Shown here in pieces: positions 54,951 to 58,744 of a DNA stretch of 64,000 nt; position 1 is the stretch's first letter; each line of letters begins with the position of its first letter. Position numbers and translations under genes: made by a program. Location: sequence record OZ240615.1, one strand, 5' to 3'. The notes below the pieces were generated by a model. It made no database searches. It saw only the letters and a program-made list of their open reading frames with translations, and had not been told where the DNA came from.

Positions 54951-55015
54951 GATTATCCTCAATGTACCATCGGCCGATGGATCAACATACCAATACTCAT
55001 CAAAAAGGACCAGAC

Positions 55016-56260
55016 ATGTATCAGCTTATACAGGCACAGACGCGTACAAAAGGAAGTTTTAATGATTGGGTAAGAACCGACATTGGTGAACAACGGCTTT
55101 TATCTATTTTTACTCTGTACAGCAATGTTCTCGTTTACCTTTACGATGTGACCAATGAGAAGAATGGGTGGTTAGATCTTTATTCTCTTCCGGTGTCCGT
55201 ACGCGACTCCGTAGCCACACTCAACCAATATCTTTCTCTGGCCAGTGGCCTGACCCTCGTTGAGGATGACCCACGCGGTGAACGCGGTGAACGCTACGTA
55301 CGTTTCCTCAACGCGATGGCCTATAAGTTCACCTTCCGAGGGACTAATGCCAACTTCAGTACTGATGAAACATTACTTCCCGACCAACGCGTAGACCTTC
55401 TCTTACAACGAGATGGGATCACCGATTACACCACAATCGTCAATAAGACATTATGGACAGTGAACGGGTTATGTTTTCGGGCATGGCCTATCGATGGCCT
55501 CGGTATCACTCTGAACCACGCCGGGAAATTTGCGTCTAAGTTTAATGATCTTCGCGTCGGGATTCTGGATTTCAGTACAATCGGCGCAGTGAGCACTTAC
55601 CCTATTACGGAAAGTATGATTCAGGGCGGAGGGACAGAACTCCCGTTATCGCGAGGGTTCTTTTTGCGGTCCCCCGAAGCATTGACCGGAAAGTCGGTAG
55701 GGTTAGTCATTGCAGGTAAGTTATATTTATTGGACAAAGAGGTATCTATCACTGGAGAAACTCGCATCCAGGTCCATATGCAAAATATCAACCTGATTAA
55801 CCATTTCTTTGAAACGCACAATTATCTGGACTATTCGGATATTCCATTATCCGAAGACATTAATGAACCAGAACAGGTCGTCGCCAATCAGTTTTTAACG
55901 GATGCGATTATCAAGGCGTTTCTGACCTCCGTTTACTCGTACCTGATTATTATTGACAGCGCGAATCTCGAAAAAGAACATCTGTCGTTAAAACGGACAA
56001 AGATTGACGGAACGTACCTTTCTCCGGGTTCAGTACTCCCTGACCTCCCTGTACAAATAGGGAACGGTTATTTAGCTGAATACACGCTTTGGGAGCAGGA
56101 CGGCTTCTATGCGCTACGATTACCCCATTCCACCATCAACAACTGGTTTTACGAAACCATTCCCATGAACGAACGACAGTTAGTCCAAAATCAACGCTAC
56201 GGCTATCACCCGGTTACTCCGTCTGAGGCTCGGTTTCTACTCATTAAAAAGGTTGCTTAA
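55016..56260 (+). CDS. Virion structural protein, about 414 aa
   Basis: The likely start is ATG55016 after AAGGA. It is divergent from the fibre genes. Confidence 0.6.
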   Translation: MYQLIQAQTRTKGSFNDWVRTDIGEQRLLSIFTLYSNVLVYLYDVTNEKNGWLDLYSLPVSVRDSVATLNQYLSLASGLTLVEDDPRGERGERYVRFLNAMAYKFTFRGTNANFSTDETLLPDQRVDLLLQRDGITDYTTIVNKTLWTVNGLCFRAWPIDGLGITLNHAGKFASKFNDLRVGILDFSTIGAVSTYPITESMIQGGGTELPLSRGFFLRSPEALTGKSVGLVIAGKLYLLDKEVSITGETRIQVHMQNINLINHFFETHNYLDYSDIPLSEDINEPEQVVANQFLTDAIIKAFLTSVYSYLIIIDSANLEKEHLSLKRTKIDGTYLSPGSVLPDLPVQIGNGYLAEYTLWEQDGFYALRLPHSTINNWFYETIPMNERQLVQNQRYGYHPVTPSEARFLLIKKVA

Positions 56261-56262
56261 CC

Positions 56263-56862
56263 ATGTGGACAACGCTTGCCGGTAATAGGTACTTTCGCTG
56301 CTTAATCGTGATCCTTTTGATTATGTTACTCGTCTTCGGTATCTATCAGGCCGGGAAGTACGTACAAAAGAAAATTAACGATACCGTTGCACAAGTCACC
56401 AACCAGATTACAAAGAATGTTCAAGAGAGCCTTCAAAAATCTCTCAATGAACAAATGGGCGGTTTGCAGAATCAAATCGACAACAATTTCAGTTCTATAA
56501 ACGGTAAATTCGATGAACAGCAACAAAGTATTAATGACACTAAGCTTAAGCTTAATAATATTGGCGATGTCTGGTTGCGCGTCGAAAGAGTACGTACCGA
56601 CGCAGAACACGTCAGTAACGCTAAAGGTACCGGAAGTAAAAGTGCCGGAAGTTCGGGAGGAAGTGATGGAACCTATTACGCCAAACTTCCAGATTCGAAT
56701 GTGCAATTTCTTAAAGGGGAAGCCTTTAGAGCAGATCAATGCGCCGTGCGACTCGGGGCAGCCCAACAAGTAATTGTGCAGTACAAAGGAGCGTTCGAGA
56801 AGTATCAAAGTCTGGTCGCTACTTATTTGGCGGCAGCACAAATCGGCGAACAAACGAAATAG
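56263..56862 (+). CDS. Inner-membrane spanin (Rz-like i-spanin), 199 aa
   Basis: One N-terminal TM (CLIVILLIMLLVFGIY), a long Gln/Asn coiled coil, WLRV followed by a flexible Gly/Ser linker, and a final helix FRADQCAVRLGAAQQVI. Confidence 0.75.
   Translation: MWTTLAGNRYFRCLIVILLIMLLVFGIYQAGKYVQKKINDTVAQVTNQITKNVQESLQKSLNEQMGGLQNQIDNNFSSINGKFDEQQQSINDTKLKLNNIGDVWLRVERVRTDAEHVSNAKGTGSKSAGSSGGSDGTYYAKLPDSNVQFLKGEAFRADQCAVRLGAAQQVIVQYKGAFEKYQSLVATYLAAAQIGEQTK
56513..56773 (+). CDS. Outer-membrane lipoprotein spanin (Rz1-like o-spanin), embedded in the +1 frame, 86 aa
   Basis: Signal peptide MNSNKVLMTLSLSLIILAMSG|C with a lipobox. The mature part is Pro-rich with two more Cys. It lies entirely inside the i-spanin gene. 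Confidence 0.75.
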   Translation: MNSNKVLMTLSLSLIILAMSGCASKEYVPTQNTSVTLKVPEVKVPEVREEVMEPITPNFQIRMCNFLKGKPLEQINAPCDSGQPNK

Positions 56863-56863
56863 C

Positions 56864-56906
56864 AAACACAGACAGAGAGGCGTTTGCCTCTCTGTCTGCT
56901 TTGTTT
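56864..56906. terminator. Bidirectional terminator (GTTT loop family)
   Basis: CAGACAGAGAGGC-GTTT-GCCTCTCTGTCTG. Confidence 0.9.
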
Positions 56907-57524
56907 TCATCGACGGTTTCGCAATGCGTTGACTACATCAGCGATTACACTACTGTTAATTTTGTCACCGACCACCGCAGACAGGATATCGCGGCGTTCC
57001 CGGTTGATGATCCCCATGTAATACCAGGTTACCATCATGGTGGGAAGGATAATAATCCCCGCAAGAGTGGCGGAAGGAAGTTCCTTTTTGTCGATACAGA
57101 CTACCGCTACAACAGATGTGAATACCAGGATAGTAAACGCCAACACCATGGCAAACATGGCGCCTATCAGTCGACGTGAACGTATCTCGTATTTATCCGG
57201 TTTTGCAATTTCATTAATGACTTCGGGATGAATAACTGGGGTAGGTTGCGGAGGCGTATCGACCTCTGGTTCGGCAACATCTGGTTCAGGGTGCTCTATT
57301 TCCGAAGCATCAACCGGGGCGATTTCCAATTGCAGCCAAATTGCTTTGTTATTGTCATCCGGGTGCGCAGCGATATAATCGCGTAGATCCTTTACCGTTG
57401 AGCCGGTAGGAGGGATAGCCGGTGCAAAGAGGTGTGCCCGCATTGACAACGAATTACCTTCACCGTCAACATAATCACTTAACTGAGTTTCATCCGGTAG
57501 TACAAGAAGTTCGCTTAATAACAT
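56907..57524 (-). CDS. Membrane protein with two C-terminal TM helices (holin candidate), 205 aa
   Basis: TMs LIGAMFAMVLAFTILVFTSVVAVVCI and LAGIIILPTMMVTWYYMGII, followed by a basic tail. The N-terminus is acidic and Pro-rich. Confidence 0.6.
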   Translation of the reverse strand: MLLSELLVLPDETQLSDYVDGEGNSLSMRAHLFAPAIPPTGSTVKDLRDYIAAHPDDNNKAIWLQLEIAPVDASEIEHPEPDVAEPEVDTPPQPTPVIHPEVINEIAKPDKYEIRSRRLIGAMFAMVLAFTILVFTSVVAVVCIDKKELPSATLAGIIILPTMMVTWYYMGIINRERRDILSAVVGDKINSSVIADVVNALRNRR

Positions 57525-58141
57525 CAGTACACCTCGTCGTAACTCGCCATCAATTGAAGGAAGACCTCGTTTAAAGGGGCTTTTGCATTAATCGTAAATA
57601 CACGAGCATTTGCTTCTGGGGCGATTTGATTAATGGCCGACAAGTAACGTCTACGATAAAAATCAAATTGGTCGATCAGTTCTTCTTCGATAGTGTCTTT
57701 CTTTCGATTACCAAGACGCTTGACGTGAGTGTCGTAATCAATGTCGAGATAAAAGATTGTTGGTTTATGATCAAAGATCCCGAGACCTTCATGAAGATTA
57801 AACAACCAATCCCAATCTTCGTCGGGGCTGTATGCGAAAGTAGAAAGCCACGAACGATCAAGAATAACTGTGTGTCCGCCTTCTAATGCGAAATTGACTT
57901 TGGCGTCAAACAATTCTTTCCGGGCCGCCACAAAGAGCAATGCTCGAGCAGCGGGTGAGGCAGGTCGTTTATTGGATGTGACAATTTCACGAATGGCCTC
58001 TGCGGGTACTGTGCTGCCCGGTTCACGGAAAACAACAACAGATTCTCCACGTTCTTTTAATGCTTGTTGTAATAAAGCCACTGCTTCTGTTTTGCCGGCG
58101 CCATCTAAACCTTCTACAATCAGTAATTTTGTTCTCGACAT
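57524..58141 (-). CDS. tmk: Thymidylate kinase
   Basis: LIVEGLDGAGKT, FREPG, LLFVAAR and ILDRSWLSTFAY. Confidence 0.95.
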   Translation of the reverse strand: MSRTKLLIVEGLDGAGKTEAVALLQQALKERGESVVVFREPGSTVPAEAIREIVTSNKRPASPAARALLFVAARKELFDAKVNFALEGGHTVILDRSWLSTFAYSPDEDWDWLFNLHEGLGIFDHKPTIFYLDIDYDTHVKRLGNRKKDTIEEELIDQFDFYRRRYLSAINQIAPEANARVFTINAKAPLNEVFLQLMASYDEVY

Positions 58142-58153
58142 GTTTAATCTCTT

Positions 58154-58744
58154 TTAAATAATACCTTGGAGTTCCAGTTGCCATTTTAAGCACAGCCAGA
58201 ATCCAATGGCGATAGAGTCGATACTGTGTTCGTCAAGGTCATCTATAACGACGTCGTCATCGACCAATAATTTCTTTTCTTTAATCAGAAGTTTAATAGC
58301 CTTTCTGACCGATTCTTTGTCTCCACCTCTTCCAGGTGCGCCGACTGCCTTTTTCGCGGTCGGGGGATCAATGAGGAACAAAGGGAGAGTATTTTTGTAT
58401 GCCCATACCGCTTCCCTGGCCATCACGATTCCTTCGACCAACGACTGAAACGCAGAAACAAACTTCAGTTTCATGTATGCCGATTCACACGATACTAATT
58501 GGGGCGCAAAATAATTTAACCGCTCGATAAGAAATTCCCTACACTTCGAATGACGCGCCCCACGATCGCCTAAGACGAGTTCCATACTGGTTTCAGTTAA
58601 TACACGGTTCGCATGAAAAGTTTCTGCGTGCCGGAGAATGAATTTTTTCTTTTCGAAATCATAATCGATAACGGAAATCCCAAAGCAATGGCTACCAGGA
58701 TCAATACCCACAATACGGAAACACTCGTCGTTCATGATCTTCAC
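58154..58744 (-). CDS. ruvC: RuvC-like Holliday junction resolvase
   Basis: IVGIDPG, VSCESAY, PPTAKKAVG...KESV and DEHSIDSIAIG. Confidence 0.9.
   Translation of the reverse strand: MKIMNDECFRIVGIDPGSHCFGISVIDYDFEKKKFILRHAETFHANRVLTETSMELVLGDRGARHSKCREFLIERLNYFAPQLVSCESAYMKLKFVSAFQSLVEGIVMAREAVWAYKNTLPLFLIDPPTAKKAVGAPGRGGDKESVRKAIKLLIKEKKLLVDDDVVIDDLDEHSIDSIAIGFWLCLKWQLELQGII

Follow-up and report, generated by a model that had tools for sequence, protein, structure and literature searches.

We examined a 64,000-nucleotide stretch of sequence record OZ240615.1 (bases 1-64000 of the genome of Klebsiella phage vB_KpM_Centimanus, 299,730 bp; the whole stretch is referred to as the window, and the phage as Centimanus). 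Two nested open reading frames (ORFs) on the plus strand of the window very probably encode a two-component spanin in the embedded arrangement of lambda Rz/Rz1, i.e., an inner-membrane subunit (i-spanin) whose gene wholly encloses, in its +1 frame, the gene for an outer-membrane lipoprotein subunit (o-spanin). An earlier note, made from the letters of the window, had proposed this Rz/Rz1-type reading, and the topology and motifs of the products, the signature of dual coding, the conservation of both frames and the matches to spanin families agree in its support. By sequence comparison the pair is orthologous to the annotated and published spanin pair of Serratia phage Moabite and was merely uncalled here; because the Moabite pair had been annotated and published, the Centimanus pair represents an annotation gap and not a discovery. 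The description of the pair as hidden, also from the earlier note, holds for the Centimanus record and for that of Klebsiella phage vB_KpM_FBKp24 (FBKp24), where the inner ORF is uncalled, whereas it does not hold for the orthologous pair, which is annotated in Moabite and was published in 2019.

We propose that CENTIMANUS_00050, labelled a hypothetical protein in the record, be renamed i-spanin and that a coding sequence at 56513..56773 be added as o-spanin. The same correction fits FBKp24 and about 20 related records; only Moabite has the inner gene annotated. The outer gene carries several labels in these phages (“putative spanin” in FBKp24, which is 99.5% identical, “Rz-like spanin” in MJ359, and “i-spanin” in BUCT660 and Yaphecito). 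The correction fills in the lysis gene set for Klebsiella jumbo phages that are therapeutic candidates.

The nested frames and their predicted products

The outer ORF encodes 199 aa; its product would be an inner-membrane protein of type II whose periplasmic part is predicted to be mostly helical. Its product has a single strong hydrophobic segment, at residues 4-34, and none elsewhere (Kyte-Doolittle, 19-residue window, maximum 2.57), with the transmembrane helix at about residues 10-32. Since positive charges flank this segment on both sides, we only infer the orientation of the protein. An AlphaFold 2 (AF2) model, used for secondary structure alone, showed by DSSP a helix at residues 9-98, a disordered Gly/Ser-rich stretch at 108-136 and a second helix at 144-196, with a mean predicted local distance difference test score (pLDDT) of 54. 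Hydrophobic residues occupy 11 of the 15 a/d positions of the second helix, and 13 of the 14 sequences in the alignment retain Cys160 within it, that of Erwinia phage PhiEaH1 among them. The N-terminal transmembrane segment that the earlier note assigned to this ORF was recovered by hydropathy, and the linker and final helix appear in the low-confidence AF2 model; the coiled coil assigned along with them was not confirmed, the hydrophobic periodicity being not significant.

Upstream of the i-spanin gene lies a gene for a gp130-like virion protein, which ends 2 nt before the i-spanin start. For that upstream gene (54962-56260, plus strand) the open frame has an ATG at 54962 (432 aa), and GenBank records use a start at 55016 (414 aa).

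The nested frames were compared with embedded two-component spanins as defined by Summer (2007) and Kongari (2018). The inner ORF is offset by 250 nt from the outer start, which places it in the +1 frame, and is wholly enclosed, extending from 0.42 to 0.85 of the outer length. In the survey of Kongari et al. (2018), the embedded o-spanin ran from 0.4-0.5 to 0.9-1.0 of the i-spanin length in about 70% of embedded pairs, and 196 of the o-spanins were wholly unannotated. The Centimanus precursor has a predicted signal peptide (residues 1-21) with the start MNSNK and a 14-residue hydrophobic core, and the lipobox LAMSG/C22; the codon for Cys22 lies at 56576-56578. The 86-aa product would be lipidated on Cys22; since the +2 residue is Ala, and not the inner-membrane-retention Asp, its destination would be the outer membrane, in the inner leaflet. 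Its mature part (65 aa) contains 8 Pro and further Cys residues at positions 64 and 79. An 86-aa ORF in the +1 frame with a signal peptide, an AMSG/C lipobox, a Pro-rich mature part and extra Cys residues had been described in the earlier note and is present at 56513-56773. Among about 15 billion predicted proteins in one collection, the exact 86-aa sequence did not occur.

Conservation and dual coding of the inner frame

To assess how likely such a frame is by chance, the outer ORF was re-coded synonymously 5000 times. In 167 of the re-coded sequences (3.3%) there was a +1 ORF of 86 aa or more, and in 16 (0.3%) an alternative-frame ORF with both a signal and a lipobox; the 34 other long ORFs of the window contained no alternative-frame ORF with signal and lipobox. 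Taken from this single sequence alone, the inner ORF is moderately unlikely by chance. As these odds are only moderate, the inner frame was judged real on its conservation and on the signature of dual coding.

Ten relatives in GenBank were compared (FBKp24; the group of KpLz-2_45, MJ359 and KpXa_1; Totoro; Moabite, Kodama, 2050HW and ParM-25; and PhiEaH1), and a +1 ORF with a lipobox was open in all ten, including PhiEaH1, where the outer protein is merely about 22-25% identical. The same was found for 8 metagenomic relatives (6 homologues and 2 that are more distant), so that the lipobox Cys and pattern were present in all 18; Asp at the +2 position was found in none of the 11 relative sequences checked for it. 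The earlier note had named conservation of both frames in relatives as a check on its reading, with interruption of the inner frame or loss of the lipobox as grounds for giving it up; both frames were kept, and neither event was seen among the 18. The motif MEPITPNFQxRxCNFLKGKPxEQINAPC is nearly invariant in the Klebsiella/Serratia branch, and Cys64 and Cys79 of the o-spanin are conserved in that clade. The o-spanin homologue of PhiEaH1 retains a lipobox of the form LMLGC and a PNFQTRL motif.

The inner protein was better conserved than the outer one (85% versus 68% identity to the KpLz-2_45 group). In a codon alignment of Centimanus with KpLz-2_45, third positions of the outer frame diverged by only 0.15 inside the overlap, against 0.66 on its upstream and 0.76 on its downstream side (Fisher p = 1.6e-14), and suppression limited to the overlap was repeated for Totoro versus Moabite (p = 8e-6) and for Centimanus versus Moabite (p = 1.8e-6). 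When the window was compared by megablast with phages of the Serratia clade (Moabitevirus), DNA could be aligned only at 56559-56807, which is essentially the overlap (80-84% identity). Purifying selection on both frames is clear in several genera.

It could be argued that the inner ORF is an untranslated chance frame in a Gln/Asn/Lys-rich gene and that only the 199-aa protein is real, given that a +1 ORF of at least this length arose in 3.3% of re-codings, that the Shine-Dalgarno sequence is weak, and that no gene caller has ever reported the 86-aa protein. We regard this as extremely improbable, because the frame, the lipobox Cys and the motif given above are kept in 18 relatives down to an outer identity of about 22-25%, the inner protein is the more conserved of the two, and it is only across the overlap that synonymous change in the outer frame is suppressed; a chance ORF was effectively ruled out by these conservation and dual-coding statistics.

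Within the overlap, the tetrapeptide FLKG is encoded in both frames (window 56707-56719, TTTCTTAAAGGGG; F149-G152 of the i-spanin and F66-G69 of the o-spanin), and this both-frame FLKG is kept in nearly all relatives of the Klebsiella/Serratia clade. Read in the o-spanin frame, the same 56707-56719 stretch contains A_AAG_GGG, a heptamer shaped like a -1 slippery site, which would lead into the i-spanin frame. The repeated tetrapeptide and the heptamer are probably explained by the dual-coding constraint.

Comparison with known spanins and the proposed function

The outer protein matched two PHROG families, phrog_37839, which has no functional label (E 5.7e-44), and phrog_2466, labelled “Rz-like spanin” (E 8.6e-6, residues 14-173); the best PHROG match of the inner protein was phrog_3198, also “Rz-like spanin”, and was marginal (E 1.2e-3). 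Neither protein reached a family in Pfam. Direct membership of the Centimanus i-spanin in PF03245 was considered and rejected, as the gathering threshold was not reached, and the PhiEaH1 homologue scored 14.1 bits against the same family. The i-spanin of a distant relative on metagenomic contig L032, located through the genes around it, passed the PF03245 cut-off (37.3 bits versus 25.4) and matched residues 128-187 of the Centimanus i-spanin (BLAST E 2e-7), which together provide a transitive link to the Rz family; since the L032 protein is a PF03245 (Rz) member, this jumbo-phage spanin family is tied to the classical Rz family.

The closest annotated counterpart is the pair CPT_Moabite_142/143 (QDB71172/QDB71173, record MK994515), annotated as i-spanin and embedded o-spanin at the syntenic position. 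By tblastn the i-spanins matched with E 8e-31 (44.7% identity over 80% of the length) and the o-spanins with E 1e-11 (45% over 92%), and the two phages share the embedded +1 arrangement, the LAMSGC lipobox, a gp130-like virion protein gene upstream, and, downstream, a terminator followed by genes for a convergent membrane protein, a thymidylate kinase and a RuvC-like resolvase. In Moabite, as in Centimanus, the endolysin gene is far removed from the spanins (about 112 kb). The two phages differ in host genus and in phage genus (Centimanus is Maaswegvirus-like and Moabite belongs to Moabitevirus), the N-terminal half of the i-spanin is heavily diverged, the C-terminus of the Centimanus o-spanin is 7 residues longer, and both genes are annotated and published for Moabite whereas neither was named in Centimanus. 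The 2019 genome announcement of Moabite named i-spanin, o-spanin and endolysin, and reported that no holin was identifiable.

The resemblance to lambda Rz/Rz1 is one of architecture: the o-spanin lies wholly within the i-spanin gene in the +1 frame, the topologies match, the predicted order of the i-spanin (transmembrane domain, helix, linker, helix) agrees with that of lambda, Pro is abundant in the mature lipoprotein, and periplasmic Cys residues occur in both subunits. The lambda i-spanin is shorter (153 aa versus 199 aa in Centimanus), the mature lambda o-spanin is shorter and richer in Pro (40 aa and 25% Pro versus 65 aa and 12% Pro), and the Centimanus pair, unlike that of lambda, lies outside any holin-endolysin-spanin cassette.

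Centimanus is a phiKZ-like, nucleus-forming jumbo phage. Window 56000-57600 matched vB_KpM_Centimanus with 100% identity at the same coordinates, and FBKp24 with 99.4% identity. As is typical of phiKZ-like phages, the window includes virion genes and genes for RNA polymerase beta subunits that are split, with homologues of phiKZ gp130 (by an annotation note) and gp140, and the FBKp24 genome paper reported a tubulin and a nucleus shell protein, both of which cluster with their counterparts in Serratia phages 2050HW and PCH45 and in Erwinia phage PhiEaH1. The split polymerase, the gp140 homologue and the FBKp24 tubulin and shell protein make “phiKZ-like jumbo phage”, as the earlier note had called the source, a fair label.

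The spanins of phiKZ itself, gp141/gp141.1, are an experimentally verified pair from the same kind of phage; like the Centimanus pair they are found near a RuvC-like gene and adjoin a gene with a gp142-type N-terminal domain. The phiKZ pair is overlapped, with the o-spanin extending past the i-spanin stop, whereas the Centimanus o-spanin is fully embedded, and the phiKZ spanins, holin, regulator and endolysin form one co-directional cassette, whereas the Centimanus endolysin is 111 kb off. Manohar et al. (2026) reported that the overlapped gp141/gp141.1 complement lambda RzamRz1am, and that holin gp142, regulator gp143 and endolysin gp144 make up one phiKZ cassette with the spanins. A 2018 catalogue had already listed spanins of phiKZ, EL, 201phi2-1 and OBP. 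The statement in the earlier note that, the endolysin aside, this group's lysis genes are poorly defined is outdated, given this catalogue of four phages and the 2026 demonstration of the phiKZ cassette.

If the Centimanus pair acts as in the models for lambda and phiKZ, its two proteins would bind to each other across the periplasm through their C-terminal parts, for which one stretch of DNA codes in both frames and which are better conserved than the rest of either protein. The peptidoglycan mesh would keep the spanin complexes apart until the endolysin removes it, whereupon the freed complexes would collapse, the inner membrane would be fused with the outer one, and the progeny would be released. 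Given the gap of only 2 nt after the virion protein gene and the strong terminator at the end of the pair, the spanins are probably expressed late, together with the structural genes.

Two other functional explanations were weighed. In the first, the lipoprotein would have another role, such as superinfection exclusion or receptor masking (compare Cor and Llp), and the outer protein would be a membrane-anchored virion or assembly factor. Proteins of the neighbouring lysis cassette are labelled “virion structural protein” in the annotations of 201phi2-1 and phiKZ-type phages, and the outer gene does come after a virion protein gene; we nonetheless find this explanation very unlikely, since it is specific to spanins that a type II membrane protein has a lipoprotein nested within it at 0.42-0.85 of its length, the hidden Markov model matches are to Rz-like spanin families, a holin-like gene lies alongside, and the shared C-terminal DNA is the most co-conserved, as expected if the products bind each other. 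The second explanation, that the pair is a dispensable relic of a spanin and that the outer membrane is disrupted (or can be disrupted) by something else, is highly improbable: while no spanin can be recognised in about 13% of phages that infect Gram-negative hosts, and spanins are dispensable in shaken cultures, purifying selection on both frames is evident in several genera, and four of the five phiKZ lysis-cassette genes, spanins included, have been reported as essential by transposon sequencing.

Several points weigh against the assignment of the pair as a spanin. Homology with lambda Rz was sought and not found (hhalign, probability 0.2%), and homology with phiKZ gp141 was likewise not found, the BLAST match having E 2.1 and the hhalign match (23.5%) covering the transmembrane helix only. 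The Centimanus outer protein gave no PF03245 Phage_lysis hit at E <= 1 (gathering threshold 25.4 bits). Its AF2 model is of low confidence (pLDDT 54), and the test for a coiled coil, a 3.5-residue (heptad) hydrophobic periodicity, was not significant. For the inner protein, the lipobox was called by the motif pattern [ILMFTV][^REKD][GAS]C alone, and the Shine-Dalgarno sequence before the inner ATG is a weak one (GGT with a 9-nt spacer). The PhiEaH1 o-spanin homologue (L010:2423-3007) is without both of the extra Cys residues, so that an o-spanin disulfide linkage is not universal in the family.

Endolysin, terminator and the convergent gene as a candidate holin

Coordinates of the spanin genes and of the associated features are collected in Table 1. 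The hairpin sits between the i-spanin gene and the convergent gene, and Moabite has an annotated terminator at the equivalent position.

Table 1. Features of the Centimanus spanin locus and the distant endolysin gene (positions are those of the window unless the record is named).
Feature	Position	Strand	Description and basis
i-spanin gene CENTIMANUS_00050 (record label “hypothetical protein”)	56263..56862	+	ATG start, 199 aa; hydropathy, AF2, PHROG, annotated orthologues
o-spanin gene, uncalled in record	56513..56773	+	ATG start, 86 aa, +1 frame of i-spanin gene; motifs, conservation, Moabite orthologue
Bidirectional intrinsic-terminator-like hairpin	56869..56898	.	stem of 13-14 bp that includes 8 G-C pairs; runs of T on either strand
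Candidate holin gene CENTIMANUS_00051 (“hypothetical protein”)	56907..57524	-	205 aa, convergent with spanin pair; hydropathy, AF2, gp142 profile match
Endolysin gene, gp144-type transglycosylase	OZ240615.1:167907-168587		about 111 kb from spanins, outside window

The location of the pair apart from any endolysin gene, as the earlier note had it, is correct, the endolysin gene being about 111 kb away. The endolysins of Centimanus and Moabite (L015:10205-10873) are without the N-terminal peptidoglycan-binding domain of gp144. They have an N-terminal hydrophobic segment at residues 4-26 that ends in ATA/SV (MPNYFWALVLCVVSVFATSATA/SV in Centimanus and MRMVFWTLVLCLVTFSFPATA/SV in Moabite) and that looks like a signal peptide or a signal-arrest-release (SAR) domain, which suggests that export of the endolysin may be Sec-dependent or of the SAR type. 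Should this signal or SAR segment be real, endolysin export in this clade would differ from that of phiKZ. A screen for a holin among the genes flanking the Centimanus endolysin found no product with a hydrophobic segment except the endolysin itself.

Papers on Klebsiella and Serratia jumbo phages have reported that no holin was found. The gene convergent with the spanin pair encodes a protein with a domain at its N-terminus that is soluble (residues 1-70), a disordered linker, two hydrophobic helices (116-147 and 155-173 by hydropathy; 111-146 and 152-170 by AF2) and a conserved tail, W-YMGIINxERRDILSA; the AF2 model had a pLDDT of 78.5 overall and of 85-92 over residues 1-70. Its predicted topology would be N-in, C-in. 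A match to this gene was present in 28 phage records, in all of which it adjoins the spanin pair or lies within about 3 kb of it and is labelled “hypothetical”; it is adjacent to the pair in the Klebsiella and Serratia phages and metagenomic contigs examined and about 3 kb from it in PhiEaH1. We infer that the gene forms part of the lysis module.

The family of the neighbour was enlarged by a profile search of 1.84 billion representatives, giving a 19-sequence profile, and was compared with a profile of the gp142 holin family built from seven Pseudomonas jumbo phages. The two profiles matched over 69 columns of the N-terminal domains (hhalign 94.2%, E 1.1e-7), with negative controls at 0.9% and 0.2%; a small profile of the neighbour had matched gp142 weakly (32% with the family profile and 4% with the single sequence). 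Other searches gave little: no match came from pairwise BLAST when the neighbour was compared with gp142 and gp143 of phiKZ, or the Moabite endolysin-adjacent genes with gp141, gp142 and gp143; a single near-identical protein was all that a word-indexed search with gp142 yielded; tblastn with the lysis regulator gp143 found homologues in Pseudomonas phages only; and in a Foldseek comparison of the neighbour with viral models only members of its own family were significant, the gp142 homologue 201phi2-1 gp227 standing at rank 21 (E 1.9).

By the profile match, the neighbour has an N-terminal cytoplasmic domain homologous to that of gp142, a class IIIb holin, and differs from it in the membrane part: gp142 has a single transmembrane domain, N-in/C-out, with a short periplasmic tail, whereas the neighbour has two helices and a conserved charged tail. 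The N-terminal domain of gp142 is regulatory and dispensable, and since the match is confined to this domain and the membrane part differs, holin function is put forward only as a hypothesis. It is quite possible, though we would stop short of calling it probable, that the neighbour is the holin of this clade, a two-helix variant of gp142 that has kept the regulatory domain and forms with the spanins one part of a split module, 111 kb from the signal- or SAR-like endolysin. If so, delivery of the endolysin would differ in the Klebsiella/Serratia/Erwinia branch, being pinholin/SAR-like or Sec-dependent. The gp142-like membrane protein beside the spanins and the signal- or SAR-type endolysin elsewhere provide a lysis hypothesis for the branch that can be tested.

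The RuvC-like gene at 58154-58744 is 29% identical to phiKZ gp140 (E 2e-26). The gene orders of the two phages are comparable. In phiKZ the order is gp140 (RuvC-like), the gp141/141.1 spanins and the gp142 holin; in Centimanus the RuvC-like gene, the thymidylate kinase gene and the 205-aa gene follow one another on the minus strand, and then comes the spanin pair on the plus strand. The closeness of a RuvC-like gene to the spanins in both phages suggests the remnant of an ancestral gp140-spanin-holin neighbourhood, which in the clade of Centimanus would since have gained a thymidylate kinase gene, had its spanin pair inverted and lost the endolysin. The regions compared are L013:15909-17611 for phiKZ and 57524-58744 (minus strand) for Centimanus. 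On distant contigs that carry the neighbour family, the thymidylate kinase gene is upstream on the same strand, adjacent in L030 and L031 and 1-4 genes off in L032 and L029; on these metagenomic contigs (L029-L032) an embedded spanin pair is nearby where flanks exist.

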